Source: Rebecca billardiae RCC1528
Taxonomy: Eukaryota; Protista; Haptophyta
DNA: 64,000 bases
Direction: 5' to 3'
NCBI GenBank assembly: GCA_965240325.2
Contig: OZ251236.1
Location: 1,550,001-1,614,000 of the forward strand
Part shown: positions 388 to 47,118 of the stretch, piece by piece
How positions within the stretch are numbered: position 1 is the first letter of the stretch
Layout of the letters: every line of letters begins with the position of its first letter
The notes under the pieces: model-generated
The model's input: only the letters and a program-made list of their open reading frames with translations
Told to the model about the DNA's origin: nothing
Database searches by the model: none
Translations under genes and position numbers: made by a program

Positions 388-425
<38 letters not shown>

Positions 426-846: not shown

Positions 847-880
<34 letters not shown>

Positions 881-28914: not shown

Positions 28915-28925
28915 GCTTGGATAAA

Positions 28926-28964
28926 CCCAACGGGATTCTCATACCGGCCCAACGGGATTCTCAT
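28926..28964. repeat. 17-bp direct repeat CCCAACGGGATTCTCAT x2 just downstream of the stop codon (also at 46587-46625)
   Basis: 28926-28942 and 28948-28964 are identical, with a 5-bp spacer. Confidence 0.9.
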
Positions 28965-29424
28965 GGCCTTTGGGCGCCTTATTTTTGGTAGTAACGACAT
29001 GGGTATGGTTTTGATAATTTGTGTAGTGTATAATTCTGTTGATTGGCGCAGCTCCATAACTCCATAAGTAATTCGACAAGGTCGGCTATTAATTCCTCGA
29101 TCAATCAAGGGATGACTATGATAACGTCGTCCTCGACTCCTCGCCGACGACGAGTCGCCGTCGTCGTCGTCGTCGCCTGGTGTACCATACCCTCGTGGAC
29201 CCGCATATCTATCATCCTTGAGTGTATTTCTGGAATACCCCTCACGAACGCTCCAAGTACAGTTTTACTAAGAATAAGAGACGCACACACCTCAGGCAGG
29301 CGAGTACGACGCGCTGGTCATGCTCCTCCAACAACACCTTGGTGCTCGGGCCGCGGCGCGCATTGGGCGCGCCTTGCCGGGCGTGTCGGGTGCCGACGCG
29401 CTCGCACGTCGCCTCCGCCGCCGC

Positions 29425-32400
29425 ATGCGTGTGCCACAACCAGTCCTGCTCGCCGCCGTGCTGCTCGCCGCGCTGCCTGCCACGCGAGCGCAGACGAGCC
29501 CGCCGCCCTCTCCGCCACCCAGCCCGCCGCCGTCGCCAACTGCGGTCGTGCTCGGCCAGACGAAGATCTCGGCCACGCAGGGCGGGCTGGCTCAGGCGCT
29601 GCAGGATCGCGACGAATTTGGCACCGCCGTCGCCAGCCTGGGCGACGTCGACGGCGACGGCGTGCCCGACGCGTTTGTCGGCGCGCCGTGGGATGCGATC
29701 AACGCCAACATCGGCGGCGCGGGGTACGTGCTGCTGATGAACGCAGAGGGCACGGTGAAGGCGGAGACGCGCATCGCCGAGCAGGAGGGCGGCTTCACCG
29801 AGTCTTTCTCCGGCCAGGCGCACTTCATCGGCGGCTCGGCCGCCGGCCTGGGCGACCTGGACGGCGACGGCGTGCCGGACATGCTGATGGCGCAGGGCGA
29901 CAAGGCCGGCTCGACGATCTGGACGCTCTTCCTCAACACGGACGGCACGGTCAAGTCGTACGTCAAGATCGCGCCCGGCGAGGGCGACCTCGCAGACCTC
30001 GGCACTGACAAGTTTGGCAACACAGTCGCGGTGCTCGGCGACGTCGACGGCGACGGCGTCGTCGATGCCCTCGTGGGCGCGGGCCGGCGCGACACGCAGT
30101 CGGCCTTCGTCCTCTTCCTGCGCACCGACGGCAGCGCGAAGGGGTACCAGGAGATCTCCGAGGCGGCGGGCGGGCTGGCCGCCTCGCCGTTCGTCAACGG
30201 CACCTGGGGCAACGCCGTGTGCGCGGCCGGTGACGTGAATGGCGACGGCATACCAGACGCGGCCGTGGGCGACGAAAAGTACGAGGACGGCGGACTCAAG
30301 TACGGCGCGCTGTACGTGCTGATGCTCCACCGGAACGGCACGGTGAAGGCGGAGGCGTTCATCAGCAAGGACGAGCTGAGCCTTCTGGCGGCCGGGCACA
30401 AGCTCGGCTCGGCTTGCGAAGGGCTGGGCGACCTCGACGGTGACGGTGTGCCAGACCTGGCGGTGGGCGCGAAAGAGGCTGGCTCCGGCGAGCAGGGCGG
30501 GGTGTTCATTCTGAACCTCAACTCGGACGGCAGCGTGAAGGCGTCGGCTGAGATCAGCCAGGGCGTGGGCGGGCTCAGCGCGAGCGGGCTCGACGAACTC
30601 GACCAGTTTGGCAGCGGCCTCGGCTTCCTGGGCGACCTCGACGGCGACGGCTCCCCAGAGCTGATGGTCGGGGCGCCGTGGGACGATGATGGCTTCAACA
30701 AAGCGGGTGCGGTGTACGTGCTCACGCTCGCCACGCCGCCCTCGTCGCCGAAACCGCCGCCCAGCCCGCCGCCGAGCTCGCCGCCGCCGAGCCCGCCGCC
30801 GAGCCCGCCGCCGAGCCCGCCACCACCATCGCCGCCCCCGAGCCCGCCGCCCAGCCCGCCGCCGCCAAAGGCGCCGCCGAGCCCGCCGCCATCGCCACCA
30901 CCAACGCCACCGCCGAGCCCGCCGCCGAGCCCGCCGCCGAGCCCGTCGCCGCCGAAACCGCCGCCGAGCCCGCCGCCGTCGCCACCACCATCGCCGCCGC
31001 CGAGCCCGCCGCCGAGTCCGCCGCCGTCGCCACCACCATTGCCGCCGCCGAGCCCGCCGCCCAGCCCGCCGCCGCCGAAGCCGCCGCCGAGCCCGCCGCC
31101 ATCGCCACCACCATCGCCACCGCCGAGCCCGCCGCCGAGCCCGCCGCCGAGCCCGTCGCCGCCGAAACCGCCGCCGAGCCCGCCGCCGTCGCCACCACCA
31201 ACGCCGCCGCCAAGCCCGCCGCCGAGCCCGCCGCCGAACCCGTCGCCGCCGAGCCCACCGCCGAGCCCGCCGCCGTCGCCACCACCATCGCCACCGCCAA
31301 GCCCGCCGCCGAGCCCACCTCCGAGCCCGCCGCCGCCGAGCCCGCCGCCATCGCCACCGCCGTCGCCACCGCCGAGCCCGCCGCCGAGCCCGCCGCCATC
31401 GCCACCGCCATCGCCACCGCCGAGCCCGCCGCCGAGCCCGCCGCCGAGCCCGCTGCCCCCGAGCCCGCCGCCGAGCCCGCCACCGTCGCCACCACCATCA
31501 CCGCCGCCGAGCCCGCCGCCGCCGAGCCCGCCGCCGTCGCCGCCGCCAAGCCCGCCACCCTCCCCGCCGCCGTCACCACCACCGCCCACGCCGCCACCAA
31601 GCCCGCCGCCGACACCACCGCCCTCCCCGCCGCCGAGCCCGCCACCGCCGAGCCCGCCACCGAGCCCGCCGCCTGCCCCTCCGCCCAGCCCGCCGCCGAG
31701 CCCGCCACCGCCATCGCCACCACCGTCGCCGCCGCCGAGCCCGCCACCCAGCCCGCCGCCAAGCCCGCCGCCAAGCCCGCCGCCCAGCCCGCCGCCCAGC
31801 CCGCCGCCCAGCCCGCCGCCGCCGTCCCCTCCACCATCGCCACCGCCATCTCCGCCGCCGTCGCCGCCACCCTCGCCGCCGCCGCCATCGCTGCCGCCGA
31901 GCCCGCCGCCGAGCCCGCCGCCGAGCCCGCCGCCGAGCCCGCCGCCGCCGAGCCCTCCGCCGAGCCCGCCGCCGAGCCCACCACCGAGCCCGCCGCCATC
32001 GCCGCCGCCGCCGAGCCCGCCGCCGAGCCCGCCACCATCACCACCGCCGTCGCCGCCACCGAGCCCGCCGCCGCCATCGCCGCCGCCGTCGCCACCGCCG
32101 AGCCCGCCACCGAGCCCGCCGCCATCGCCACCGCCATCGCCACCGCCGAGCCCGCCGCCGAGCCCGCCGCCATCGCCACCGCCGTCGCCACCGCCGAGCC
32201 CGCCGCCGAGCCCGCCGCCATCGCCACCGCCGTCGCCGCCGCCGAGCCCGCCGCCGAGCCCGCCGCCGAGCCCGCCGCCCCCGAGCCCGCCGCCGAGCCC
32301 GCCACCGTCGCCGCCACCATCACCGCCGCCGAGCCCGCCGCCGCCGAGCCCGCCGCCGTCGCCGCCGCCAAGCCCGCCACCAAGCCCGCCGCCGTCACCA

Positions 32401-35400
32401 CCACCGCCCACGCCGCCGCCAAGCCCGCCGCCGACACCACCGCCCTCCCCGCCGCCGAGCCCGCCGCCGCCGAGCCCGCCACCGAGCCCGCCGCCTGCCC
32501 CTCCGCCCAGCCCGCCGCCGAGCCCGCCACCGCCATCGCCACCACCGTCGCCGCCGCCGAGCCCGCCGCCCAGCCCGCCGCCAAGCCCGCCGCCAAGCCC
32601 GCCGCCCAGCCCGCCGCCCAGCCCGCCGCCCAGCCCGCCGCCGCCGTCCCCTCCGCCATCGCCACCGCCATCTCCGCCGCCGTCGCCACCACCCTCGCCG
32701 CCGCCGCCATCGCTGCCGCCGAGCCCGCCGCCGAGCCCGCCGCCGAGCCCGCCGCCGAGCCCGCCGCCGCCGAGCCCGCCGCCGAGCCCGCCGCCGAGCC
32801 CACCACCGAGCCCGCCGCCGTCGCCGCCGCCGCCGAGCCCGCCGCCGATCCCGCCACCATCACCACCGCCGTCGCCGCCACCGAGCCCGCCGCCGCCATC
32901 GCCGCCGCCGTCGCCACCGCCGAGCCCGCCACCGAGCCCGCCGCCATCGCCACCGCCATCGCCACCGCCGAGCCCGCCGCCGAGCCCGCCGCCATCGCCA
33001 CCGCCGTCGCCACCGCCGAGCCCGCCGCCGAGCCCGCCGCCATCGCCACCGCCGTCGCCGCCGCCGAGCCCGCCGCCGAGCCCGCCGCCGAGCCCGCCGC
33101 CCCCGAGCCCGCCGCCGAGCCCGCCACCGTCGCCGCCACCATCACCGCCGCCGAGCCCGCCGCCGCCGAGCCCGCCGCCGTCGCCGCCGCCAAGCCCGCC
33201 ACCAAGCCCGCCGCCGTCACCACCACCGCCCACGCCGCCGCCAAGCCCGCCGCCGACACCACCGCCCTCCCCGCCGCCGAGCCCGCCGCCGCCGAGCCCG
33301 CCACCGAGCCCGCCGCCTGCCCCTCCGCCCAACCCGCCGCCGAGCCCGCCACCGCCATTGCCACCACCGTCACCGCCGCCGAGCCCGCCGCCCAGCCCGC
33401 CGCCAAGCCCGCCGCCCAGCCCGCCGCCCAGCCCGCCGCCCAGCCCGCCGCCCAGCCCGCCGCCGCCGTCCCCTCCGCCATCGCCACCGCCATCTCCGCC
33501 GCCGTCGCCACCACCCTCGCCGCCGCCGCCATCGCTGCCGCCGAGCCCGCCGCCGAGCCCGCCGCCGAGCCCGCCGCCGAGCCCGCCGCCGCCGAGCCCG
33601 CCGCCGAGCCCGCCGCCGAGCCCACCACCGAGCCCGCCGCCGTCGCCGCCGCCGCCGAGCCCGCCGCCGAGCCCGCCACCATCGCCACCACCATCGCCGC
33701 CACCGAGCCCGCCGCCGCCTTCGCCGCCGCCGTCGCCACCGCCGAGCCCGCCACCGAGCCCGCCGCCATCGCCACCGCCATCGCCACCGCCGAGCCCGCC
33801 GCCGAGCCCGCCGCCATCGCCACCGCCGTCGCCACCGCCGAGCCCGCCGCCGAGCCCGCCGCCGAGCCCGCCGCCCCCGAGCCCGCCGCCGAGCCCGCCG
33901 CCGTCACCACCACCATCACCGCCGCCGAGCCCGCCGCCGCCGAGCCCGCCGCCGTCGCCGCCGCCGAGCCCGCCACCCTCCCCGCCGCCGTCACCACCAC
34001 CGCCCACGCCGCCGCCAAGCCCGCCGCCGACACCACCGCCCTCCCCGCCGCCGAGCCCGCCGCCGCCGAGCCCGCCACCGAGCCCGCCGCCTGCCCCTCC
34101 GCCCAGCCCGCCACCGAGCCCGCCACCGCCATCGCCACCACCGTCGCCGCCGCCGAGCCCGCCACCCAGCCCGCCGCCAAGCCCGCCGCCCAGCCCGCCG
34201 CCCAGCCCGCCGCCCAGCCCACCGCCCAGCCCGCCGCCGCCGTCCCCTCCACCATCGCCACCGCCATCTCCGCCGCCGTCGCCGCCACCCTCGCCGCCGC
34301 CGCCATCGCCGCCACCAAGCCCGCCGCCGAGGCCGCCGCCGAGCCCGCCGCCGAGCCCGCCGCCGCCGAGCCCTCCGCCGAGCCCGCCACCAAGCCAACC
34401 GCCGAGCCCGCCGCCATCGCCGCCGCCGCCGAGCCCGCCGCCCAGCCCGCCGCCATCGCCGCCACCGAGCCCTCCGCCGAGTCCCCCACCGCCATCGCCG
34501 CCGCCGTCGCCACCGCCGAGCCCGCCACCGAGCCCGCCGCCATCGCCACCGCCATCGCCACCGCCGAGCCCGCCGCCGAGCCCGCCGCCATCGCCACCAC
34601 CGTCGCCACCGCCGAGCCCGCCGCCGAGCCCGCCGCCATCGCCACCGCCATCGCCGCCGCCGAGCCCGCCGCCGAGCCCGCCGCCGAGCCCGCCGCCCCC
34701 GAGCTCGCCGCCGAGCCCGCCACCGTCGCCACCACCATCACCGCCGCCGAGCCCGCCGCCGCCGAGCCCGCCGCCGTCGCCGCCGCCAAGCCCGCCACCA
34801 AGCCCGCCGCCGTCACCACCACCGCCCACGCCACCACCAAGCCCGCCGCCGACACCACCGCCCTTCCCGCCACCGAGCCCGCCGCCGCCGAGCCCGCCAC
34901 CGAGCCCGCCGCCTGCCCCTCCGCCCAGCCCGCCGCCGAGCCCGCCACCGCCATTGCCACCACCGTCGCCGCCGCCGAGCCCGCCACCCAGCCCGCCGCC
35001 AAGCCCGCCGCCAAGCCCGCCGCCCAGCCCGCCGCCCAGCCCGCCGCCCAGCCCGCCGCCGCCGTCCCCTCCGCCATCGCCACCGCCATCTCCGCCGCCG
35101 TCGCCGCCACCCTCGCCGCCGCCGCCATCGCCGCCACCAAGCCCGCCGCCGAGCCCGCCGCCGAGCCCGCCGCCGAGCCCGCCGCCGCCGAGCCCTCCGC
35201 CGAGCCCGCCACCAAGCCCACCGCCGAGCCCGCCGCCATCGCCGCCGCCGCCGAGCCCGCCGCCCAGCCCGCCGCCATCGCCGCCACCGAGCCCTCCGCC
35301 GAGTCCCCCACCGCCATCACCACCTCCGTCGCCACCGCCGAGCCCGCCACCGAGCCCGCCACCGAGCCCGCCGCCGCCGAGCCCGCCACCGAGCCCGCCG

Positions 35401-38400
35401 CCGACGCCACCGCCGTCGCCACCGCCATCACCACCGCCACCGAGCCCGCCGCCGAGCCCGCCACCGTCGCCACCGCCGAGCCCGCCGCCGAGCCCGCCGC
35501 CGCCAAGCCCTCCGCCCAGCCCGCCGCCCAGCCCGCCGCCGAGCCCGCCGCCATCGCCGCCGCCGCCGAGCCCGCCGCCGAGCCCGCCACCATCGCCGCC
35601 ACCGAGCCCTCCGCCGAGCCCGCCACCGCCATCATCACCTCCGTCGCCTCCGCCGAGCCCGCCACCCACCCCACCGCCGAGCCCGCCGCCCCCAAGCCCG
35701 CCTCCGAGCCCGCCACCGACACCGCCGCCATCGCCGCCGCCAAGCCCGCCGCCACCGAGCCCGCCACCGTCGCCACCGCCGAGCCCGCCGCCGAGCCCGC
35801 CGCCGAGCCCGCCGCCGCCGAGCCCGCCGCCGAGCCCGCCGCCGACACCACCGCCATCGCCACCGCCATCGCCTCCGCCACCGAGCCCACCGCCAAGCCC
35901 GCCGCCATCGCCGCCACCGAGCCCGCCGCCCAGCCCGCCGCCGCCGTCTCCACCGCCATCGCCCCCGCCATCTCCGCCACCGTCGCCGCCGCCGTCGCCG
36001 CCGCCGCCATCGCCGCCACCAAGCCCGCCGCCGAGCCCGCCGCCGAGCCCGCCGCCGAGCCCGCCGCCGCCAAGCCCTCCGCCGAGCCCGCCACCAAGCC
36101 CACCGCCGAGCCCGCCGCCATCGCCGCCGCCGCCGAGCCCACCGCCGAGCCCGCCACCATCGCCGCCACCGAGCCCTCCGCCGAGCCCGCCACCGCCATC
36201 ACCACCTCCGTCGCCTCCGCCGAGCCCGCCACCGAGCCCTCCGCCGAGCCCGCCGCCCCCAAGCCCGCCTCCGAGCCCGCCGCCGACACCACCGCCTTCG
36301 CCACCGCCATCGCCGCCGCCGCCGAGCCCCCCGCCGATTCCCCCGCCGAGCCCGCCTCCGGCGCCGCCGCCCAGCCCGCCGCCGCCCAGCCCGCCGCCAT
36401 CGCCACCGCCGTCGCCGCCGCCGTCGCCACCGCCGTCGCCGCCACCGCCAAGCCCGCCACCGAGCCCGCCGCCAGCCCCGCCCCCGAGTCCGCCGCCGCC
36501 GAGCCCGCCACCGAGCCCGCCACCATCGCCGCCGCCGAGCCCGCCGCCGAGCCCGCCGCCGCCCAGCCCGCCGCCATCGCCGCCGCCCAGCCCGCCACCC
36601 AACCCGCCGCCATCGCCGCCGCCCAGCCCGCCGCCCAGTCCGCCGCCGGCACCGCCACCGAGCCCGCCACCGCCGTCTCCGCCGCCAAGCCCGCCGCCCA
36701 GCCCACCGCCATCGCCGCCGCCGAGCCCACCACCGCCGAGCCCGCCGCCATCCCCGCCTCCCTCGCCACCGCCGGTGCCGCCGCCCAGCCCGCCGCCGCC
36801 ATCGCCGCCGCCCTCGCCGCCGCCCATCTCTCCACCCTCGCCACCGCCAAGCCCGCCACCGCCCTCGCCGCCGCCGAGCCCGCCGCCCGCCAGTCCGCCG
36901 GCGCCACCACCAAGTCCGCCGCCGCCCAGCCCACCACCAACGCCACCGCCGAGCCCGCCACCGTCGCCGCCGCCGTCGCCGCCACCACCCGGCGCGCCGC
37001 CCTCGCCGCCGCCGAGCCCGCCGCCCCTGCACCCGCCCGCGCCGCCGCCGAGCCCACCACCATCGCCTCCGCCCTCGCCGCCGCCTCAGCCCCCGCCTCC
37101 GCTTCCCCCGCCGATCCCGCCACCGAGCCCACCGCCGAATCCACCGCCGTCGCCGCCGCCGCCAAGCCCGCCGCCCGCCCCGCCGCCCGCCCCGCCCCCG
37201 CAGCCACCGCCGTCGCCGCCGCCGCCGGGCTTGCCACCAAGCCCGCCGCCGAGCCCGCCGCCCGCGCCGCCGCCGCGCCCGCCGCCGCCCAGCCCGCCGC
37301 CCAACCCGCCGCCGTCGCCGCCGCCGAGCCCGCCGCCCAACCCTCCACCTCCAAGCCCACCGCCAAGCCCACCCCCTTCGCCGCCGCCGACGCCGCCGCC
37401 TCCCGGGCCACCGCCGTCGCCGCCGCCCGCTCCACCGCCACAGGCGCCACCGCCGCCGCCACCGACGCCGCCGCCGAGCCCGCCGCCCTCGCCGCCGCCC
37501 TCGCCGCCGCCGCTCCCACCACCGCCCAGCCCGCCGCGCCCGCCGCCGTTCGTGCCGCCGCCGCTGCCGCCAAGCGCGTCCCCGCCGCCGAGCGCGCCGC
37601 CGCCGTCCGCGCCGCCGTCGCCCCCTCCGCTCTCCCCGCCGCCCTCTCCGCCCGGCAGCTCGTCCTACCTCGGCCTCACGCTCGACGCCGAGCCGAGCGC
37701 GTACGGCACACAGGCGGCGCAGCGGGCGCTGGCCGACGGCCTCGCGAGCGCGGCGGCCATCCCGGCCGAGTGGGTGGGCGTGGTCTCCGTGTCGGCCGCG
37801 TCGGTGCGCGTGGTGCTGCGCGTCTTCCAGCCGAGCGACCCGGCCGCCCCCGACGCGGCCGCCGCGCTGCAGGCGCTCTCAGCGGAGGGCCTGGGCGCCT
37901 CGCTCGGCGTGGGCGTGCTCGTGACGCCCGAGCCGCTCGTCGCGGGCTGCTCCGAGCCGGGCGCGGCCAACTACGAGCCCGGAGTCGAAGTGGACGACGG
38001 CAGCTGCGTGGCTCACTCGCCGCCGCCGCCGGCGTCGCCGCCGAGCGCGCCGCCGAGCCCGCCGCCCGCGTCGCCGCCGCCGAGCCCGCCGCCGAGCCCG
38101 CCGCCGAGCCCGCCGCCGCCGAGCCCACCGCCCCTTCTGCCACCGCCGCCGCGCGTGGCTCCGTTCCCACCGCCGAGCCCGCCGAGCCCGCCGCCCGCGC
38201 CGCCGCCCAGCCCGCCGCCGAGCCCGCCGCCGGGCGCGCCGCCCGCACCGCCGCCGAGCGCGCCGCCGAGCGCGCCACCGAGCGAGCCACCGAGCGCGCC
38301 GCCGCCGGCGCCACCGCCGTCCTCGCCGCCGCAGCCGCCGCCGCGCCCGCCGCCGCGCCCGCCGCCGCCGAGCCCGCCGCCGGCCCTGCCGCCGCCGCCT

Positions 38401-41400
38401 CGCGCTGAGCCGTTCCCGCCGCCTGCGCCGCCAAGCCCGCCGCCGCGCCCGCCTCCGCCGCGCCCGCCGCCGAGCCCGCCACCGAGCCCGCCGCCCTTGC
38501 CGCCGCCGCCACCACCCGGCACGCCCCCGGCGTCGCCGCCCTCGCCACCGCCGCCGCCGCCGCCGCACGCGCCGCCTCTGCTGCCGCCCTCGCCGCCGCC
38601 CTCGCCACCGCCGATGCCGCCGCTGCCGTCGCTGCCACCCTCGCCGCCGCCTCGCCCGCCGCCGCCGAGTGCGCCGCCCTCGCCGCCGCCGCCGCCGCGC
38701 ACCGAGCCGTTCCCGCCGCCGGCGCCGCCGAGCCCGCCGCCGAGCCCGCCGCCGAGCCCGCCCCCGCCGAGCCCACCACCCAGCCCGCCACCATCCCCAC
38801 CGCCAAGCCCGCCCTCGCCGCCTCCGCTGCCTCCGCCGCGTGATCCGCCGAGCGCGCCGCCGAGCGCGCCGCCCACGCCGCCGCCCTCGCCGTCGCCGCG
38901 CCCGCCGCCTGGCGCGCCGCCGAGCTCGCCGCCGATGCCGCCGCCGAATCTGCCGCCGCACGCGCCGCCGCCGCACCCGCCGCCCAGTCCGCCGCCTGGC
39001 ACACCGCCGCCGATGCCTCCGCCCTCGCCGCCGCCTACGCCGCCGCCGCCGAGCCCGCCACCGTCTCTGCCGCCGCCGCCGCGCACGGAGCCGTTCCCGC
39101 CGCCGGCGCCGCCGAGTCCGCCGCCGAATCCGCCGCCGAGCCCGCCACCGCAGAGTCCGCCGCCGAGCCCCTCTCCGCCTTCGTCCCCCAGCCCGCCCTC
39201 GCCGCCTCCGCCGCCTCCGCCGACCACGCCGCCGAGCGAGCCGCCGACCACGCCGCCAGCACCGCCGCCCACGCCACCGCCACCGCCGCCGCCGCCCGCG
39301 CCGCCGCCGCGCCCGCCGCCGGTGCCGCCGACACCGCCGCCGCCGCCGCGCACGGAGCCCTTCCCGCCGCCGGCGCCGCCGAGCCCGCCGCCAAGCCCAC
39401 CTCCGTCACCACCGCCCAGCTCGCCACCGCCGCCGCCGCCATCGCCGCCGCCATCGCCGCCGCCGGGCCCGCCGCCGCACCCGCCGCCGAGCTCTCCGCC
39501 GCCGCTGCCGCCACCCAGCCCGCCGCCGCCGCCGCCGCCCGCGATCCGCGTGAGCGTGCTCGGCGGCAGCCGCGAGGGCGCGCCGCTCGGCTCGGACGAC
39601 GCGGCGCTCGAGCTCGAGGGTGCGGGCTTTGACAGCCTGGCCGGCGGCGCGTTTGGCGAGATCCAGTGCGCCTTCACGCGCGCCGACGGCGGCGGGGACG
39701 GTGGCGGCCCGCTGCTCTCGGGCGCGACGGTGCTGAGCGACGCGCGGCTGCGCTGCGCCATGCCCGCCGCCGCCTCGTCCGGCGCCCCCTCCGCCGCGGG
39801 CGCGTACACCGTCGGCCTCGCCCTCGGCGCCGTGGGCGCGTCCACGGACGTGGATGTCTCCGGGCTCTTCGGCCCGGTCTCGTTTGAGCTGTACGACATG
39901 GCGGCCGTGTCGGTGCTCGAGCTGCGCCCGCCGGGCGGGCCGGTGGGCGGCGGCACGGCGGTCACGCTCGTGGGCTCGGGCTTTGCCGAGTACGGCGAGG
40001 GCCAGCTGTGCTGCGTGCTCGGCGGCGGCGGCTGCGCGGCGGCGGCGACGCTGCTGCCGCCGTCGGCGGCGGCGCCAACCCTGAGCCGCGCGCGCTGCGT
40101 GCTGCCGCCGCCGCTGGGCGGCGCGGCGGGCAGCGTGGCGCTCGAGCTCTCGCTTGGCGGCGGCAGCGCCGACTCGACCACCGCCTCGGCGCTGCCCTTC
40201 TTCGCGTACGACCCGCCCACCCTCGGCTCCGTCAGCCCGGCGAGCGGCGACGCGAACGGCGGCACGGAGGTGACGATCGGGGGCGCGGGCTTCGACGCGC
40301 TGGCCGGCGGCGCGCTGCTGGCCGTGCGCTTCGGCGACGCGCCCGCGCAGCCGCCGGCGCGCGTCACGGCGGGCGAGGTTGTCGTCTCCACGCGGTACGG
40401 CGCCGCGGGCCGCGCGCAGCTCCGCGTCTCGCTCAACGGCCAGCAGTTCACGCCCGCGGCCGCCGCGACGCCGCCGCCCGCGGGTGCGCTCGCGTTCACG
40501 TTCGTCGGCCTGCACGCGCCCGTGCTCGAGGGTGTGGCGTTCAACGGCGCGGCGACGCTGATGGTGCTGCGCTTCGACGCGCAGCCGACCGACCGCGCGG
40601 GCATGGGCAGCGGCGTGGGCGAGTGCTCGCGCGTCCTCGACGACGACACCGTCGCGCTGGTCGGCGGCGGCGCGGCCGCGGCCGCGGCCGCGCCGCCGCA
40701 GTGCTACTGGACGGACGACTCGACGCTCGTCGCGCGGCTGAGCTCGGCGACGCTCGTGCGCGCCGGCTCGGAGGTGGGCGTGCGCGCGGGCGCGCTGCGC
40801 CCCGAGCAGTGCGGCACGCCGTGCGCCGCCGCCCTCGCCTCCGCCGCCGTGCGCGCCGCCATCGACGCGGACGCGCCGTGCGGCGAGGGCGTGCCGTGCC
40901 CGACGCCTGTCGCAGCCGTGTCGGGCCCGGCGGTGCTCTCGGCTTGCCCGGGCGCGTCGCTCGCGCTCGACGGCTCCGCCTCGTCGCGCGGCGGCATCGG
41001 GCCCGCCGCCTTTGAGTGGCGCGTCGACCCGAGCCGCTCGGCGCGCGCGGCGTCGCTCAACGCGCGGCTGAGCGCGCTGCCGGCGCGCACGCCTCAGCTC
41101 TCGCTCGGCGGGCCCGGTGCGGCCTCGCCGACCGAGCTCGGCGTGAGCGGCTCGTTCGTGTTCGTGCTGCGCGTCACGTCGTTCCTTGGCGTGCCCTCCG
41201 CGCCCGCCGAGTGGCCCGTGTCGCGCGGCGACGGCGCCAGCCCGATCCTCGCCATCGACGGCGCGCCCGAGCTGCGCGCGCGCGCCTCCGAGCCCACGCT
41301 GCTGAGCGGGCGCGCGGAGCTCGCGCCGTGCTGGCCGCCGAGCTTCGAGCCGGCGATGGTGTTCAGCTGGGCGCTCGAGGGCGCAGCGCAGGTGGGCGGC

Positions 41401-44400
41401 GGCGCGAACGCGAGCAGCAGCGCCTCCGCCGGCGAGCTCGCCGCCGCGACGGACGTGCTGCTCGCGCGCCTCGCGTCCGCGCGCACCGCGGTGCTGCAGC
41501 TGCCGCCGCACTCGCTGGCCGCCGGCTGGGCGTACGACCTGGCGCTCACGGCGAGGATGGCGGCGGCACCCGCGCAGGCGTCGACGGCACGCGTGCGCGT
41601 GCGCGTCGCGCGGCAGCCGCTGCGCGCGGTGATCGCCGGCGGCGACCGCCGCGTGCCGAGCTCGCTGCGCCTCGCCGTCGACGCCTCCGCGTCATTCGAC
41701 CCCGATGCGCCGACGGCCGACGGCGGCGACGGCGGCATGCCGCCGCTGTCGTTCGCGTGGAGCGTGGCGAACGCGAGCTCGCTCGAGCCGGTGGCTCTCG
41801 AGCCGTCCGCGGCGAACGCAAGCGGCGCGCTCTTCGAGCTTGCGCCCGGCACGCTGCCGCCGGGCGTGTACGCGCTCACCGTGCGCGTGTCCGCGCCCGG
41901 CCGCGCGCCCGCGGCCGCGTCGGTGACGGTCGAGGCGGTGCCGGGCGCGGTGCCCACGCTCGGCTTCGAGCCGCTCGGGCGGCGCAAGTGGCCGGCGGTG
42001 TTCGACCGGAACCCCGAGCGGCTGACTATTAACGCGCGCCTCGACGCCGCCTCGCGCGCGCTCGAGGCGGCGGGGCAGGCGCGCTTCAGCTACGAGTGGA
42101 GCGCGCGGCGCGTGGGCGCGGCCGGCGCGCTCGAGCCCGCCGGTCTCGACCTCGCGGACAGCGAGCGGGTGACCACGACGGGCGCGGCGCTGCGCACGGT
42201 CGCGATCCGCAGCGGCGCGCTCGCGCCCGGTGCGACGTACGCATTCCGCCTCGCCGTGCTCGGCGGCGCGCAGCCCGCGTACACGGAGGTGCGCGTCACG
42301 ATCAATCGGCCGCCGTACGGCGGAGGGCTCGAGGTGGCGCCGGCGTCGGGCGTGGCGCTGCAGACGAGCTTTGCGCTGTACGCGGCGGGGTGGGCGGAGG
42401 ACGACGAGGAGGACCTGCCGCTGAGCTACGCGTTCTCGCACGCGCCGCTCGGCACCGACGCCGTCGCCGCCGTCGCCGCGCTCGGCGCCGCCTCCGCCTC
42501 CGCCTCGGCGGCCGCGCTTCTCCCCGCGGGCAACCGCACGCTCACCGTCAGGGTGGCGGACGCGCTCGGCGGCGCGGCGCACGCGCACACGGCCGTGGCC
42601 GTCGCGCCGCCCGGCGAGGGCGCGGGGCTACTCGACTCGGTGCTCACGCGCGCGTACGCCGCGGTCGCGACGGGCGCGGCCGAGACCGCCACGCAGCTCG
42701 TGAGCGCCCTCGCCGACGCGCTTGACGCGACGCCCGCGGGCGGCGACAACGCCACCGTCGCCTCGGCCACGCTCGCTCGGCTGCTCGAGCTCACGGCGGG
42801 CGCGGCGGAGGCGTCCGCGCCGACCGCCGAAGCACGCGCGGCGAGCGCGTCCGCGCTCGCCGCCGTGCTCGAGGCCGCGCCGCCCGGCGCGTTCGACGCC
42901 TCCGCGCAGACCGCGGGCCTCGAGCAGGTCGCCGCCCTCGCGTCGCAGTCGGCCGCGTCGGGCGTCGACGGACCGACCGCGGCCGCGCTGCTGCGCGCGG
43001 CGGACGCGGCGCTCTCCGCCGACACCGACGCCGACGCGCCGCTGAGCGCGGCGGAGGCGGAGGCCGTGGGCGGAGCGGCGACGAGCGCGGTGGGCGCGCT
43101 CGCCATCGCGCTGCTCGCCGGCGCCGTGTCGGGCGAGGCGCCCTTCGAGGCCGTGGGCAAGGCCATCAACGTGAGCGCGACGCGCGCGGACGCGGGCGCG
43201 CTCGGCAACATCACGCTGCCCGGGCCGGGCGGCGCGGGTTCGGTGGGCGTGCCGGCGAGCGTGTTCGGCGGCGTGCCGCTCGAGCTGCTCGAGGGCGGCG
43301 TCGACGTCGTGCTCTGGTCCTCGGCGCGCAACGTGCACGGCGACCCGTCGACGCAGGCGAATGGCACGGCCGTGGCGTCGGGGCTGGTGACGCCCGTCTT
43401 CTCCGTCACGCTCTACTCGGCGTCGGCCGGGCTGGCGCTCACCATCTCCGACCTGCCGGACGACGGGCGCGTGCTGATCGAGGTGCCCGGGCTCGACGGC
43501 GCGGGCGGCGCGGGCGAGTGGGGCTGCGTGTGGTGGGACGAGGGCGCGAGCGCGTGGCTCGATGACGGCTGCGAGACGGTGGTCGCGCGTGCGGACGACG
43601 GCTCGCTCGCGCGCTACTGCGCGTGCACGCACCTGACCGACTTTGCGGGCGTGGCCGTGCCGACGGACGCGGACGCGGCGCGCACCGAGGTGGTCGAGTT
43701 CAACATCAACACGCTCTCCCTTGATGACGCCGCTGCAGCCGTCGGCGTCGGCTCCGGCCCCGTCCTCGCGCGCAACCCGTACATCTTCTGGCTGGTGGTG
43801 GCGATGAGTGCCGGCTGCGGACTCAGCGTGGCGCTGTTCGGGGCGCGCGACTTGCGCGACCACGCGCGGCGCAAGGAGCGCATCCGGCGGCTGCTCGCGA
43901 GCGAGGCCGGGCCCGCCGGTGGGCTGCCCGCCTCGCCGGCCAAGCCGGCCAAGCCCTCTCTCTTCCAGCGCCGCGCGGCCAAGCTCCAGGCGGAGGAGGA
44001 CGCCCTGTTTGGCGGCTCACCGTGGCGGCCCGCGCCCGCCGACGCGCCCGCCGTCGGCACGCACAGCCGGCCCGCCTCCTCCTCCGTCCCGGGGCCGCGC
44101 TTGGTCGCGCCGGCGGACGGCTGGGACGCGGGCGGGCGCGCGGTGCGCGCGTCGGCCCCTCTCGCCTCCATCTCGCCCGAGGGCAGCTTCGCCAAGCGGC
44201 AGCCGCCCCAGCTCTCGCCGCGGCGCGGCAGCGACGGCGCCGCTAGCCGCGGCGGCGCGGAGGCGCTCGGCTTTGCCGACAGGCTCGAGGCGCGGCTCGA
44301 CGACCTCGACGACCTGGTGGACGAGACGAAGCGGCGCGCGGCGCTCACGATGCAGAAGTACGCGCGCGGGCGCAAGGCGCGCGCCCTTGTCGACGAGGCC

Positions 44401-46575
44401 TCGCCCCAGTTCCGCGAGCGCAAGGCGCGCGCCTCGGACCGCACGCGCGACCACTCGCTGACCAAGCTCGTGCGGCTCGTGGGCGAGAGGCTGAGCACAG
44501 ACCACTCGCTGCTCGGCATCTGGTTCGCCGACCCGGAGGACGCGAAGCGCGCCGAGCTGGCGCAGATCTTCTGGAACATCGCGATGCTCGGCCTCGTGAT
44601 CACGTGCATGCTCTACGACGCGAGCGGCGGGCCTCCGGACGCGTCGGCGGCGCCGAGCGTCTCGCTGCTGAGCGCGGTGCTCACGGCGCTTCTCACCGCG
44701 GCCCTCTCGTTCCCCGCGCTCGCGCTCTTCCGGCTGCTCTTCCGCTGGGGGTACGGCCGGCGCTCGGCGCCGCTCTCGAAGCGCGTGTTCGCCACGTTCC
44801 TCCGCGCCGAGCTCGCGCAGCGCGAACGCGAGCGCGCGCCCTTCTCCACCGCCGTCAAGACGAGCGTGCGCACCGGCGCGTACCTGCGGCCCGCGCTGCC
44901 GCGCAAGAACTCAGACCGGCGCGGCGACGGCGGCGCGCTGCGCGCCGCCGCGCCCGCCGACCTCGAGCTCGCGCGCGAGTTCGCGCGGCGCGCGTCGATC
45001 GAGGCGGAGCGCTCCTCCATGCCGAGCATGCCCGGGCTCGCGCCGGTCACGCTGCCCGGCATGCCCGGCCGCTCGTCGCCGCGCGCCAAGCCGCGGCCGC
45101 CGCCGCCGCCGGGCATGACGGTGCGCCGGCCGGGCGGGCCCCGCGCCACCGGCCAGCTGCCGCCGAGCATGGCAGCGTCGATGGCGGCGACGGCGGCGGT
45201 GGCGGCGGCGGCGGGCGCTTCGGAGGGCGAGCGCACCGACGCGCCCGCCGCGGCCACGGCCGCCAAGCCGGGCAGCCTCTTCGCGCCGCGGGCGGTGGCC
45301 GTGCCGAGTGCCGACGCGTTCAAGCAGGCGCGAGTCACGCCCGTGCCCACCGCGGGCGCGCTCGACCCCGGCTCGTTCGGCCGGCACAGGAAGTCGGACG
45401 AGGACGAGTTCGAGGCGAGCGGCAGCTTCAACCAAGCGTCGTCCGAGCGCGCCGCCCGGCGCGCGGTCGCCGCGTCGCTCAGCGTCTCGCTCCGGGGCAC
45501 GAGCGCGCACGCGGAGGCGGAGCGCGCGGCCGCGGCGGAGCCGCCGTCCGCGCTCGGCCTCGTGCGCGACTTTGCCGACGTGGCGTCGAACCGTCACGGC
45601 CGCTCGCCGCACCCCGGCTCGCCGCCGCTGAGGCGCGATGACGCGCCGCTCACGCCCAGCGGCCTCGCGGGTCAGCGCCGCCCGCACTCGCGCCCCTCCT
45701 CGGCATCGTGCGCCGCCATCTCCGCCGCGTCCACCCCGCGTGCGAGCGCAGCAGACGGCGAGGAGGCGGGTGCGACCGAGGAGGCGGAGGCGGCGATGCG
45801 CACGAGCATTAGCGAGGTGCTGCCCACGCCCCCGCCCAGCCCGCCGCCGCCGGGCGGTCCGGCGTTCTCGTTCAAGACGGGGCAGGTCCCCGCGCCTACC
45901 GACCTGCCGCCCGCCGCCGGTCCCGCCGCCGCTGCTGCGGAGGAGGAGGCGGAGGGCGGCGGTCTGGACGAGCAGACGGTCGCGCTGCTCAAGCTCAAGT
46001 TCGAGGCGTTCGACGCGGACGACAACGGCTCGGTGGACGGCACCGAGTTCGGCGCGCTGCTCGAGTCGCTCGGCTTCCGGCTGCGCCCGCGCCGCGTCAA
46101 GCAGCTCGCCTCGGAGCTGGACACCAACGGCAACGGGCTGATCGGCTTCGACGAGCTGTGCGACTGGTACGAGAAGATGGTCGCGGACGAGGCCGCAAAG
46201 GAGGCGCGCCGCGCGGCGGGCTGGCAAGGCCGCGTGCGCCGCGTGCTGCGCAGGCTGACGCCGCCGCCACTCGTCAAGCTCTTGCTCGCGTGGCTGGCGA
46301 TGTGGGCCATCTTCGTCGCGCTCGCGCTGCTCGCGGTCGCGTACGCGCTCACGTTTGGCGCGCAGCAGACGCGCTGGCTCCTCTTCAGCTGGACGTTCGC
46401 CGAGGTGCAGACGCTCGGGCTGGAGGAGCCGGTCATCATCGCGATCACCGTGCTCGCGCCCATCCTCTTCGACCGGCTGCTCTCGCAGGGCGGCGCGACG
46501 GGCGAGGCGATCAACGAGCTGCTCGCGACGACCGTCGCGACGGCCGTCACCGCGATGCACAACCTCTGCGGCTGA
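29425..46575 (+). CDS. Giant polycystin-1-like surface receptor, copy 2 (head type B; 5716 aa), probable chimera
   Basis: Uninterrupted ORF 29320..46575. ATG 29425 gives a signal peptide (MRVPQPVLLAAVLLAALPATRAQ). Six FG-GAP repeats differ from copy 1; the C-terminal ~9 kb is almost identical to copy 1. Confidence 0.88.
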   Translation: MRVPQPVLLAAVLLAALPATRAQTSPPPSPPPSPPPSPTAVVLGQTKISATQGGLAQALQDRDEFGTAVASLGDVDGDGVPDAFVGAPWDAINANIGGAGYVLLMNAEGTVKAETRIAEQEGGFTESFSGQAHFIGGSAAGLGDLDGDGVPDMLMAQGDKAGSTIWTLFLNTDGTVKSYVKIAPGEGDLADLGTDKFGNTVAVLGDVDGDGVVDALVGAGRRDTQSAFVLFLRTDGSAKGYQEISEAAGGLAASPFVNGTWGNAVCAAGDVNGDGIPDAAVGDEKYEDGGLKYGALYVLMLHRNGTVKAEAFISKDELSLLAAGHKLGSACEGLGDLDGDGVPDLAVGAKEAGSGEQGGVFILNLNSDGSVKASAEISQGVGGLSASGLDELDQFGSGLGFLGDLDGDGSPELMVGAPWDDDGFNKAGAVYVLTLATPPSSPKPPPSPPPSSPPPSPPPSPPPSPPPPSPPPSPPPSPPPPKAPPSPPPSPPPTPPPSPPPSPPPSPSPPKPPPSPPPSPPPSPPPSPPPSPPPSPPPLPPPSPPPSPPPPKPPPSPPPSPPPSPPPSPPPSPPPSPSPPKPPPSPPPSPPPTPPPSPPPSPPPNPSPPSPPPSPPPSPPPSPPPSPPPSPPPSPPPPSPPPSPPPSPPPSPPPSPPPSPPPSPPPSPPPSPPPSPLPPSPPPSPPPSPPPSPPPSPPPPSPPPSPPPSPPPSPPPSPPPPTPPPSPPPTPPPSPPPSPPPPSPPPSPPPAPPPSPPPSPPPPSPPPSPPPSPPPSPPPSPPPSPPPSPPPSPPPSPPPPSPPPSPPPSPPPSPPPSPPPPSLPPSPPPSPPPSPPPSPPPPSPPPSPPPSPPPSPPPSPPPPSPPPSPPPSPPPSPPPSPPPPSPPPSPPPSPPPSPPPSPPPSPPPSPPPSPPPSPPPSPPPSPPPSPPPSPPPSPPPSPPPSPPPSPPPPSPPPSPPPSPPPSPPPSPPPPSPPPSPPPSPPPSPPPSPPPPTPPPSPPPTPPPSPPPSPPPPSPPPSPPPAPPPSPPPSPPPPSPPPSPPPSPPPSPPPSPPPSPPPSPPPSPPPSPPPPSPPPSPPPSPPPSPPPSPPPPSLPPSPPPSPPPSPPPSPPPPSPPPSPPPSPPPSPPPSPPPPSPPPIPPPSPPPSPPPSPPPPSPPPSPPPSPPPSPPPSPPPSPPPSPPPSPPPSPPPSPPPSPPPSPPPSPPPSPPPSPPPSPPPSPPPPSPPPSPPPSPPPSPPPSPPPPSPPPSPPPSPPPSPPPSPPPPTPPPSPPPTPPPSPPPSPPPPSPPPSPPPAPPPNPPPSPPPPLPPPSPPPSPPPSPPPSPPPSPPPSPPPSPPPSPPPPSPPPSPPPSPPPSPPPSPPPPSLPPSPPPSPPPSPPPSPPPPSPPPSPPPSPPPSPPPSPPPPSPPPSPPPSPPPSPPPSPPPPSPPPSPPPSPPPSPPPSPPPSPPPSPPPSPPPSPPPSPPPSPPPSPPPSPPPPSPPPSPPPSPPPSPPPSPPPPSPPPSPPPSPPPSPPPSPPPPTPPPSPPPTPPPSPPPSPPPPSPPPSPPPAPPPSPPPSPPPPSPPPSPPPSPPPSPPPSPPPSPPPSPPPSPPPSPPPPSPPPSPPPSPPPSPPPSPPPPSPPPSPPPRPPPSPPPSPPPPSPPPSPPPSQPPSPPPSPPPPSPPPSPPPSPPPSPPPSPPPPSPPPSPPPSPPPSPPPSPPPSPPPSPPPSPPPSPPPSPPPSPPPSPPPSPPPSPPPSPPPSPPPSPPPPSSPPSPPPSPPPSPPPSPPPPSPPPSPPPSPPPSPPPSPPPPTPPPSPPPTPPPFPPPSPPPPSPPPSPPPAPPPSPPPSPPPPLPPPSPPPSPPPSPPPSPPPSPPPSPPPSPPPSPPPPSPPPSPPPSPPPSPPPSPPPPSPPPSPPPSPPPSPPPSPPPPSPPPSPPPSPPPSPPPSPPPPSPPPSPPPSPPPSPPPSPPPPSPPPSPPPSPPPSPPPSPPPPSPPPSPPPTPPPSPPPSPPPPSPPPSPPPSPPPSPPPSPPPPSPPPSPPPSPPPSPPPSPPPPSPPPSPPPSPPPSPPPSPPPPSSPPSPPPSPPPTPPPSPPPPSPPPSPPPTPPPSPPPSPPPPSPPPSPPPSPPPSPPPSPPPPSPPPSPPPTPPPSPPPSPPPPSPPPSPPPSPPPSPPPSPPPPSPPPSPPPSPPPSPPPSPPPPSPPPSPPPSPPPSPPPSPPPPSPPPSPPPSPPPSPPPSPPPPSPPPSPPPSPPPSPPPSPPPPSPPPSPPPSPPPSPPPSPPPPSPPPSPPPTPPPSPPPSPPPPSPPPIPPPSPPPAPPPSPPPPSPPPSPPPSPPPSPPPSPPPPSPPPSPPPAPPPSPPPPSPPPSPPPSPPPSPPPSPPPPSPPPSPPPSPPPNPPPSPPPSPPPSPPPAPPPSPPPPSPPPSPPPSPPPSPPPSPPPPSPPPSPPPSPPPVPPPSPPPPSPPPSPPPISPPSPPPSPPPPSPPPSPPPASPPAPPPSPPPPSPPPTPPPSPPPSPPPSPPPPGAPPSPPPSPPPLHPPAPPPSPPPSPPPSPPPQPPPPLPPPIPPPSPPPNPPPSPPPPSPPPAPPPAPPPQPPPSPPPPGLPPSPPPSPPPAPPPRPPPPSPPPNPPPSPPPSPPPNPPPPSPPPSPPPSPPPTPPPPGPPPSPPPAPPPQAPPPPPPTPPPSPPPSPPPSPPPLPPPPSPPRPPPFVPPPLPPSASPPPSAPPPSAPPSPPPLSPPPSPPGSSSYLGLTLDAEPSAYGTQAAQRALADGLASAAAIPAEWVGVVSVSAASVRVVLRVFQPSDPAAPDAAAALQALSAEGLGASLGVGVLVTPEPLVAGCSEPGAANYEPGVEVDDGSCVAHSPPPPASPPSAPPSPPPASPPPSPPPSPPPSPPPPSPPPLLPPPPRVAPFPPPSPPSPPPAPPPSPPPSPPPGAPPAPPPSAPPSAPPSEPPSAPPPAPPPSSPPQPPPRPPPRPPPPSPPPALPPPPRAEPFPPPAPPSPPPRPPPPRPPPSPPPSPPPLPPPPPPGTPPASPPSPPPPPPPHAPPLLPPSPPPSPPPMPPLPSLPPSPPPRPPPPSAPPSPPPPPRTEPFPPPAPPSPPPSPPPSPPPPSPPPSPPPSPPPSPPSPPPLPPPRDPPSAPPSAPPTPPPSPSPRPPPGAPPSSPPMPPPNLPPHAPPPHPPPSPPPGTPPPMPPPSPPPTPPPPSPPPSLPPPPRTEPFPPPAPPSPPPNPPPSPPPQSPPPSPSPPSSPSPPSPPPPPPPTTPPSEPPTTPPAPPPTPPPPPPPPAPPPRPPPVPPTPPPPPRTEPFPPPAPPSPPPSPPPSPPPSSPPPPPPSPPPSPPPGPPPHPPPSSPPPLPPPSPPPPPPPAIRVSVLGGSREGAPLGSDDAALELEGAGFDSLAGGAFGEIQCAFTRADGGGDGGGPLLSGATVLSDARLRCAMPAAASSGAPSAAGAYTVGLALGAVGASTDVDVSGLFGPVSFELYDMAAVSVLELRPPGGPVGGGTAVTLVGSGFAEYGEGQLCCVLGGGGCAAAATLLPPSAAAPTLSRARCVLPPPLGGAAGSVALELSLGGGSADSTTASALPFFAYDPPTLGSVSPASGDANGGTEVTIGGAGFDALAGGALLAVRFGDAPAQPPARVTAGEVVVSTRYGAAGRAQLRVSLNGQQFTPAAAATPPPAGALAFTFVGLHAPVLEGVAFNGAATLMVLRFDAQPTDRAGMGSGVGECSRVLDDDTVALVGGGAAAAAAAPPQCYWTDDSTLVARLSSATLVRAGSEVGVRAGALRPEQCGTPCAAALASAAVRAAIDADAPCGEGVPCPTPVAAVSGPAVLSACPGASLALDGSASSRGGIGPAAFEWRVDPSRSARAASLNARLSALPARTPQLSLGGPGAASPTELGVSGSFVFVLRVTSFLGVPSAPAEWPVSRGDGASPILAIDGAPELRARASEPTLLSGRAELAPCWPPSFEPAMVFSWALEGAAQVGGGANASSSASAGELAAATDVLLARLASARTAVLQLPPHSLAAGWAYDLALTARMAAAPAQASTARVRVRVARQPLRAVIAGGDRRVPSSLRLAVDASASFDPDAPTADGGDGGMPPLSFAWSVANASSLEPVALEPSAANASGALFELAPGTLPPGVYALTVRVSAPGRAPAAASVTVEAVPGAVPTLGFEPLGRRKWPAVFDRNPERLTINARLDAASRALEAAGQARFSYEWSARRVGAAGALEPAGLDLADSERVTTTGAALRTVAIRSGALAPGATYAFRLAVLGGAQPAYTEVRVTINRPPYGGGLEVAPASGVALQTSFALYAAGWAEDDEEDLPLSYAFSHAPLGTDAVAAVAALGAASASASAAALLPAGNRTLTVRVADALGGAAHAHTAVAVAPPGEGAGLLDSVLTRAYAAVATGAAETATQLVSALADALDATPAGGDNATVASATLARLLELTAGAAEASAPTAEARAASASALAAVLEAAPPGAFDASAQTAGLEQVAALASQSAASGVDGPTAAALLRAADAALSADTDADAPLSAAEAEAVGGAATSAVGALAIALLAGAVSGEAPFEAVGKAINVSATRADAGALGNITLPGPGGAGSVGVPASVFGGVPLELLEGGVDVVLWSSARNVHGDPSTQANGTAVASGLVTPVFSVTLYSASAGLALTISDLPDDGRVLIEVPGLDGAGGAGEWGCVWWDEGASAWLDDGCETVVARADDGSLARYCACTHLTDFAGVAVPTDADAARTEVVEFNINTLSLDDAAAAVGVGSGPVLARNPYIFWLVVAMSAGCGLSVALFGARDLRDHARRKERIRRLLASEAGPAGGLPASPAKPAKPSLFQRRAAKLQAEEDALFGGSPWRPAPADAPAVGTHSRPASSSVPGPRLVAPADGWDAGGRAVRASAPLASISPEGSFAKRQPPQLSPRRGSDGAASRGGAEALGFADRLEARLDDLDDLVDETKRRAALTMQKYARGRKARALVDEASPQFRERKARASDRTRDHSLTKLVRLVGERLSTDHSLLGIWFADPEDAKRAELAQIFWNIAMLGLVITCMLYDASGGPPDASAAPSVSLLSAVLTALLTAALSFPALALFRLLFRWGYGRRSAPLSKRVFATFLRAELAQRERERAPFSTAVKTSVRTGAYLRPALPRKNSDRRGDGGALRAAAPADLELAREFARRASIEAERSSMPSMPGLAPVTLPGMPGRSSPRAKPRPPPPPGMTVRRPGGPRATGQLPPSMAASMAATAAVAAAAGASEGERTDAPAAATAAKPGSLFAPRAVAVPSADAFKQARVTPVPTAGALDPGSFGRHRKSDEDEFEASGSFNQASSERAARRAVAASLSVSLRGTSAHAEAERAAAAEPPSALGLVRDFADVASNRHGRSPHPGSPPLRRDDAPLTPSGLAGQRRPHSRPSSASCAAISAASTPRASAADGEEAGATEEAEAAMRTSISEVLPTPPPSPPPPGGPAFSFKTGQVPAPTDLPPAAGPAAAAAEEEAEGGGLDEQTVALLKLKFEAFDADDNGSVDGTEFGALLESLGFRLRPRRVKQLASELDTNGNGLIGFDELCDWYEKMVADEAAKEARRAAGWQGRVRRVLRRLTPPPLVKLLLAWLAMWAIFVALALLAVAYALTFGAQQTRWLLFSWTFAEVQTLGLEEPVIIAITVLAPILFDRLLSQGGATGEAINELLATTVATAVTAMHNLCG
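30736..37653 (+). repeat. Extensin-like shaft of copy 2 (~2306 codons) with an 822-bp higher-order repeat
   Basis: Marker gcctgcccct at 31671, 32493, 33315, 34089 and 34911 (spacings 822, 822, 774, 822). Confidence 0.93.
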
Positions 46576-47118
46576 GCTTGGATAAACCCAACGGGATTCT
46601 CATACCGGCCCAACGGGATTCTCATGGCCTTTGGGCGCCTTATTTTTGGTAGTAACGACATGGGTATGGTTTTGATAATTTGTGTAGTGTATAATTCTGT
46701 TGATTGGCGCAGCTCCATAACTCCATAAGTAATTCGACAAGGTCGGCTATTAATTCCTCGATCAATCAAGGGATGACTATGATAACGTCGTCCTCGACTC
46801 CTCGCCGACGACGAGTCGCCGTCGTCGTCGTCGTCGCCTGGTGTACCATACCATACCCTCGTGGACCCAGGTGGACCCGCATATCTATCATCCTTGAGTG
46901 TATTTCAGCTGGGACTCTGGCACCACCCCTACCCCTCACGAACGCTCCAAGTACAGTTTTACTAAGAATAAGAGACGCACACACCTCAGGCAGGCGAGTA
47001 CGACGCGCTGGTCATGCTCCTCCAACAACACCTTGGTGCTCGGGCCGCGGCGCGCATTGGGCGCGCCTTGCCGGGCGTGTCGGGTGCCGACGCGCTCGCA
47101 CGTCGCCTCCGCCGCCGC

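Follow-up and report, generated by a model that had tools for sequence, protein, structure and literature searches.

How does a gene come to carry the head of one type of neighbour and the tail of another? The question is raised by an array of giant genes in the haptophyte Rebecca billardiae RCC1528. The stretch analysed here (the window) comprises 64,000 nucleotides (nt), positions 1,550,001-1,614,000 of contig OZ251236.1 (C19 below), from a 72-Mb, 41-contig genome of a eukaryote rich in guanine and cytosine (GC); the GC content of the window is 79.6%. Unless a contig is named, positions are window coordinates, and all features of the array lie on the plus strand. The window contains three giant intact open reading frames (ORFs) arranged head to tail on that strand. 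In each of them a signal peptide and an FG-GAP propeller head are followed by an (SPPP)n shaft, a short non-repetitive segment and a second proline-rich region, and then by TIG, REJ and GPS domains, hydrophobic stretches and an EF-hand pair. The middle gene, copy 2 (c2), is an intact ORF at 29425-46575 (frame open from 29320), and it is the recombinant copy: it joins a 5' part of one type, which we call B, to a 3' part of the copy-1 type, with one clean switch within 37261-40200.

Searching the window's own genome and the flanking DNA revealed a fourth intact copy with head B (c4), located 3' of copy 3 (c3) and outside the window. Together the genes form a four-copy head-to-tail array of about 69 kb, all on the plus strand. 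Copy 1 (c1; 13054-28914), defined by its ORF, FG-GAP head and tail alignment, has head A, a shaft of its own and a tail of haplotype T1; its frame is open from 12862, and the likely start is the Met preceding the signal peptide, at 13054. It is followed by spacer S1 (tail to head B, 28915-29319, about 53% GC), c2, and spacer S2 (46576-47013, identified by spacer comparison). Next comes c3 (47014-64000), with head B and a tail of haplotype T2, whose stop codon lies 23 nt beyond the window end. The ATG of c4 is about 455 nt beyond the window end (C19:1,614,455-1,631,917; intact ORF of about 5,820 amino acids (aa)), within the interval C19:1614024-1631917, or window end +24 to +17917. With T1 denoting the tail haplotype of c1 and c2, and T2 that of c3 and c4, the array order from c1 to c4 is A-T1, B-T1, B-T2, B-T2. 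Copy 2, which has head B, a B-type shaft and a T1 tail, sits directly 3' of c1, with the remaining B copies on its other side. Unit length is 17.4-17.9 kb; the units are intronless, about 80% GC and >99% identical, and the ORFs of all four are intact. Since the DNA 3' of the c4 stop is unrelated to the inter-copy spacers, and the genes 5' of c1 are likewise unrelated, the array holds exactly four copies, with c1 and c4 as its ends.

The switch in c2 was located in three-way and four-way MAFFT alignments of the region alignable with c1 (c2 coordinates 36204-46575). Within the (SPPP)n shaft, self-megablast was uninformative, giving many diagonals at about 78%, and it was replaced by unique-25-mer chaining and affine-gap dynamic-programming alignment. 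An earlier note on this DNA had proposed the chimera from a set of diagnostic sites, every one of which was reproduced in both the three-way and the four-way alignments. On the 5' side, c2 and c3 share G at 37260 and 54705 against A at 19596 in c1, and T at 36338 and 53783 against G at 18674, the latter being a Ser-to-Ile 'PIP' variant. On the 3' side, c1 and c2 share T at 22537 and 40201 against C at 57646 in c3, and they likewise agree against c3 at 58060, 60224, 61387-8, 61570-61600, 62354-5 and 62554/62557. In the triplet of c1, c2 and c3, one of seven informative sites 5' of the break is copy-1-like in c2 (the exception being 37018), and 38 of 39 are copy-1-like 3' of it (exception 43170), as the note had claimed for the sequence from 40201 on. 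The maximum chi-square break falls between 37260 and 40201, which is also the interval the note had given, and permutation yields p <= 5e-5 with either c3 or c4 as the B parent. The informative sites are therefore not randomly interleaved and show one switch. At most variable sites between c2 coordinates 36204 and 37260, c1 differs from c2, c3 and c4 alike; at four late-shaft sites (36543, 36918, 37115 and 37131) c3 agrees with c1 against c2.

The breakpoint interval itself is a zone of complete identity, which we term zone X. Defined by exact string identity, it occupies 19597-22536 in c1, 37261-40200 in c2, where it codes for aa 2648-3627 of the ORF, and 54706-57645 in c3. Its 2,940 nt are letter-for-letter identical across all four copies, against differences at about 0.85% of sites in the flanking sequence. 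For a stretch of this length, some 25 variable sites would be expected, and 0 were observed (Poisson P ~1.5e-11).

Downstream of zone X the affinity of c2 is with c1. Over 40201-46575 the two differ by 5 single-nucleotide polymorphisms (SNPs) and one 3-nt deletion (0.078%), and 34 SNPs (0.694%) separate c2 from c3 and c4 over 40201-45100. Between 40201 and 46319, 34 sites split c1 and c2 from c3 and c4, and 46319 is the last site at which c2 agrees with c1 and differs from c3. The T1-type 3' part of c2, together with the proximal part of S2, spans 40201-46849. When polarised by six paralogues dispersed in the genome, T1 and T2 each hold derived states, which makes (c1,c2) and (c3,c4) true tail clades and not groups united by shared ancestral states. 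As possible ectopic donors of T1 or T2, the six dispersed paralogues offered little: most derived states occur in none of them, and individual paralogues share a few T1 states. Among the codons that differ between T1 and T2, 13 differ synonymously and 17 non-synonymously. Six of the T1/T2 differences lie within 31 nt (44122-44152 against 61570-61600), where 'WDAGGRAVRASAPL' is replaced by 'GDAGGSVARAPAPL' in the cytoplasmic part; because the outgroup paralogue states are mixed there, this cluster looks like a micro-conversion or a complex mutation.

The 5' part of c2 (29320-37260) is B-type, and its closest relative is c4, not c3. It differs from c4 by 9 SNPs and 2 indels (0.114%) and from c3 by 39 SNPs and 1 indel (0.507%). 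Across head and shaft, c2 agrees with c4 against c3 at 32 of 41 sites, c3 agrees with c4 against c2 at 7, and c2 agrees with c3 against c4 at 2. In the shaft alone these counts are 28, 6 and 2, and in head B alone c2 sides with c4 against c3 at 4 sites, with 1 site private to c2. Although c2 and c3 share head B and a colinear shaft, one 249-nt indel apart, that indel is a deletion private to c3; a 48-nt deletion and a 252-nt insertion in the shaft are private to c4. The 5' half of c3 is the outlier among the B copies. A cluster of c2-c3 mismatches at 32238-32849 was considered as a misplaced indel and rejected, as dynamic-programming alignment retained the same single 249-nt gap. No other head-B copy that could serve as outgroup or donor was found in the genome, head B and the spacer occurring three times only. 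The divergence of c2 from c4 is 0.114% in the 5' half against 0.694% in the tail over 40201-45100 (p = 8.5e-8). Taking c4 as the 5' parent and c1 as the 3' parent makes both halves of c2 equally young (0.114% and 0.078%, p = 0.6).

These relationships change the origin that the earlier note had proposed, namely an anti-Lepore crossover in an A-B pair leaving the order A, B/A, B, with the 5' part of c2 taken from c3. The likeness of that part to c3 in head B, colinear shaft and the cited SNPs stands, and c2 is a genuine recombinant placed directly 3' of c1; its 5' parent was named wrongly, c4 being closer, and the three-copy order gives way to the four-copy one. The three-copy window gave the wrong parent because the nearest relative of c2 lies just beyond it.

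The spacers follow the tails only in part. S2 equals S1 over its first 273 nt, and to that extent the two are the same sequence, as the earlier note had stated. Past 273 nt, S2 departs from S1 by three indel events that it has in common with S3, the spacer 5' of c4, and it has one private 11-nt insertion. The first spacer event at which the c2 unit agrees with S3 and not with S1 is at 46850. The left bound of the T1-like tract of c2 is clear, and its right bound, 46786-46850, is set by spacer indels only. The two inter-copy spacers in the window (28915-29319 and 46576-47013) are islands of about 53% GC among genes of about 80% GC, and short tandem motifs within them (ACCAT; ACCCTCGTGG/ACCCAGGTGG) account for the indels between spacers.

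Copy 2 is not alone in its mixed ancestry, since c3 and c4 are also mosaics. A block of 7,977 nt (54577-62553 in c3, corresponding to c2 coordinates 37132-45105) is exactly identical in c3 and c4 and is bounded on both sides, with 0.445% divergence in the 5' flank and 0.88% in the 3' flank; it is a two-sided conversion-like tract. Expressed over the intervals used for c2, the divergence between c3 and c4 is 0.445% in the 5' half, 0 over 40201-45100 and 0.88% over 45101-46575. In its last 1.5 kb, c3 is nearer to c1 and c2 than to c4, and its divergence from c1 over 45101-46575 is 0.475%. Copy 3 is likewise consistent with a hybrid of the c2 type, but an older one, with a 5' half 0.445% from c4 and a last 1.5 kb 0.475% from c1 (p = 0.83). 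The last 1.5 kb of c4 retains states shared with a paralogue at C19:1.905 Mb, and c1-c3 are derived there; this is an array-edge effect, with less homogenisation at the edge of the array.

Exchange may also extend beyond the array. At least seven further paralogues are found elsewhere, on contigs C19 (two), C23, C18, C14, C1 and C34, and those on C19 (two), C18, C14, C1 and C34 match c2 with 96-100% identity along a 4.3-kb core (TIG-REJ-GPS, c2 ~39,270-43,600). The core is sharply bounded: paralogue identity falls to 50-75% on either side, and only the copy at C19:1.905 Mb stays >90% identical to the 3' end. Over zone X the dispersed paralogues are only about 70% identical, except for that on C34, which reaches about 96-98% over 38350-39270. 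Such a core is suggestive of a constant ectodomain that has been homogenised across the genome or recently shuffled.

We read c2 as a real recombinant paralogue in an array reshuffled by non-allelic homologous recombination (NAHR), most likely as a new hybrid formed through one unequal crossover, and we hold this reading tentatively, at slightly less than an even chance. The crossover would have taken place within a long shared stretch, now seen as zone X (37261-40200), and would have joined a 5' part of the c4 lineage (head B and shaft) to the 3' part of c1 (the TIG-REJ-GPS-membrane-EF-hand tail), placing the hybrid directly 3' of c1. Subsequent exchanges would then account for the 8 kb over which c3 and c4 do not differ and for the absence of any difference among the four copies in zone X. 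Equal ages of the two halves are what would be expected if one event made both, and no 'old' c2 sequence is left between its two young segments. Moreover, with c1 and c4 at the ends of the array, the internal positions are those expected of hybrids. The single switch, the identity zone, the nearest relative of each half and their equal youth are observed directly; a crossover with copy gain instead of conversion, and at least one further exchange that put or kept c3 between c2 and c4, are what we infer. That exchange could have been a crossover between haplotypes of unequal copy number, or alternatively a duplication offset by two units, after which one copy was lost. Several observations weigh against the crossover. 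Copy 3, with its older 5' half (0.45-0.5%), sits between c2 and c4, so the 5' parent is not adjacent, and a simple sister-chromatid crossover between c1 and c4 would give three copies, or five in a different order. Among NAHR-only histories starting from a two-copy array, enumerated by hand, none gives the observed order and distances without an extra event. Relative to c3 alone, c2 is not mosaic, its divergence being about uniform (0.507% in the 5' half against 0.694% over 40201-45100, p = 0.19; 0.54% over 45101-46575), and it is mosaic relative to c4 and to c1; because of this uniformity, c2 could be an old copy from which c1 received its tail and c4 its 5' half. The distal agreement of S2 with S3 fits a conversion tract ending in the spacer. 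Finally, the two-sided c3-c4 block shows that a conversion-like exchange of about 8 kb operates here, and such an exchange could explain the c2 tail without any change in copy number.

Long-tract non-allelic gene conversion at constant copy number is accordingly a strong competitor, to which we assign a substantial probability that also falls short of one half. It supposes four old copies, with the B copies about 0.5% apart, and three overlapping tracts: from c2 to c4 over head, shaft and zone X; between c2 and c1, in either direction, from 37261 to the proximal spacer; and from c4 to c3 over 37132-45105. In its donor version, c1 and c4 are the chimeras and c2 is not. The homogeneous c2-c3 divergence (0.51%, 0.69% and 0.54%), the 7,977-nt two-sided exact block and the right-hand bound of the T1-like tract at 46786-46850, which the agreement of distal S2 with S3 provides, all favour it; the three tracts would in addition account for the four-copy identity of zone X, and the dispersed paralogues with their sharply bounded core of 96-100% identity point to frequent ectopic exchange. 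Gene conversion tracts in most eukaryotes usually extend up to a few kb, and those needed here, at least 6.1 kb and up to 10.6 kb, are beyond the usual range. With c2 as recipient, two tracts of equal age must abut exactly and overwrite the whole gene; with c2 as donor, it would be a coincidence that its two donations are of nearly the same age (0.11% and 0.08%), and the excess of private changes in c2 (12 against 3 in its partners, p = 0.035) is not predicted. The number of events required is about equal in the two scenarios, and we regard crossover and conversion as about equally viable, with a slight lean to crossover. It is improbable that c2 is an assembly artefact, that is, a false path joining c4-type 5' reads to c1-type 3' reads in a truly smaller array. 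Such units are hard to assemble, being 17.4-17.9 kb long and >99% identical and including 6-7 kb of (SPPP)n with a GC content near 85%, and the switch falls in a stretch without distinguishing sites. However, variants private to c2 occur to either side of the switch (7 in head and shaft; 4 SNPs and a 3-nt in-frame deletion in the tail). Its shaft layout is also unique, sharing neither the 249-nt deletion seen in c3 nor the 48-nt deletion and 252-nt insertion seen in c4, and together these features argue that c2 is a separate physical copy. Phasing the junction needs only 3.1 kb (37115-40201), and 72 Mb in 41 contigs implies far longer reads; all four ORFs are, in addition, intact. A haplotig duplication was also considered and rejected, as no single other copy is near c2 over its full length. 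Least probable is one unequal crossover between c1 and c3 in an A-B pair giving A, B/A, B: its geometry and switch point fit, and c2 and c3 share head B and a colinear shaft, but a fourth copy exists and c2 sides with c4 against c3 at 32 of 41 informative 5' sites. This model predicts equally old halves, and the observed 0.507% from c3 against 0.078% from c1 (p = 2e-6) leads us to reject it.

The crossover that we tentatively favour invites comparison with known systems. In the haemoglobin anti-Lepore hybrids, unequal crossover between the tandem delta- and beta-globin genes produces a duplication. As in that case, the genes here are direct tandem paralogues, with tails >99% identical over about 10 kb, and the hybrid lies between the parental types, combining the 5' part of the downstream type with the 3' part of the upstream type at a single junction in shared sequence. 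Unlike that case, the array comprises four copies, a further gene separates the hybrid from its 5' parent, the spacer after the hybrid follows the prediction over its first 273 nt only and other copies are mosaic too; the units are, furthermore, 17.5 kb long, intronless and 80% GC, in contrast to the globin genes. The concerted evolution of tandem families by interlocus gene conversion is likewise established. The array resembles it in its exact blocks with diverged flanks (the c3-c4 block and zone X) and in the weaker homogenisation of the 3' end of c4, which lies at the array edge, and differs from usual conversion in its tracts of 8-10 kb. Hybrid genes and copy-number variants generated by NAHR have been described in receptor clusters, and the reports on KIR (PMC2816608), GYPA/GYPB (bioRxiv 10.1101/083634) and maize p1/p2 (PMC3014980) describe misaligned exchange producing loci with the 5' part of one paralogue and the 3' part of another, as proposed here. 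Population haplotypes and reciprocal products support those examples, whereas the present one comes from one assembly. Because the 5' parent is not adjacent and spacer identity is only partial, we file the locus under NAHR or conversion-like exchange in a tandem array and not as a simple anti-Lepore duplication. Both NAHR and gene conversion in tandem arrays are textbook processes, and c2 is a new example, not a new mechanism.

The value of the locus is that it shows a giant adhesion/receptor-like family evolving at single-site resolution. Homologous exchange through long identical stretches of the shared body can combine heads and tails anew and add copies, and a single 70-kb array preserves traces of at least three distinct exchanges. 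It also carries a practical warning, as parent assignment from a partial view of an array can mislead. It is conceivable, though in our judgement unlikely, that the sharply bounded identical stretches (zone X and the 4.3-kb core) are fixed exchange junctions of a germline cassette shuffling of surface receptors. If so, joining variable heads (two FG-GAP types, leucine-rich repeat (LRR) and others) and variable cytoplasmic tails to a constant ectodomain in new combinations would be a routine activity of the genome instead of an occasional accident.

As to the identity of these genes, the (SPPP)n shaft comprises about 1,900-2,300 residues, equivalent to 6-7 kb at about 85% GC, and the short non-repetitive segment 3' of it has no Pfam match. 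At the protein level, head A (c1) shares 41% identity with head B (c2 and c3). Pfam detects REJ (E 4.6e-44) and then GPS (E 5.7e-6) ahead of the first membrane segment, and the hydrophobic stretches between GPS and the EF-hands are presumably membrane-spanning. The combination of REJ, GPS and TIG followed by membrane segments is shared with the polycystin-1/sea-urchin REJ receptor family, a likeness that bears on gene identity only and not on the recombination event. These genes differ from polycystin-1 and the REJ receptors in their N-terminal FG-GAP propeller, their (SPPP)n shaft of about 2,000 residues and their EF-hand pair. They differ also in the polycystin-type membrane module and PLAT, neither of which was detected here: a Pfam-only scan of 43900-46572 gave no match to PLAT or PKD_channel at E <= 0.01. 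Literature searches for algal proteins with this domain architecture returned no relevant report. In the last FG-GAP blade, position 48025 of c3 (30331 in c2) holds a private c3 change of the conserved 'GAPWDDDG' to 'GARWDDDG', one of four changes private to the c3 head.

The dispersed paralogues vary at their heads. That of the copy at C19:1.905 Mb consists of a duplicated module of about 230 aa and of unknown type, those of the C18 and C14 paralogues are LRR, and the C34 paralogue has a third FG-GAP head. In the C1 copy, a signal peptide and the first ~60 residues of a head-A-like sequence lead directly into the shaft, and the head appears to have been lost. The partial family member on C23 follows a 100-N gap (3401-3500), which is preceded, at C23:1-3400, by an AT-richer satellite of GGTACA/TTGGTACAC-like units; no canonical telomere repeat was found at the start of that contig. 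Upstream of the array in the window lie a UBR1/PRT6-like N-recognin (E3 ligase) at 30-6338 (PRT6_C, E 1.8e-20) and, on the minus strand at 8445-10862, a PhoD-like phosphatase (E 2.7e-64).

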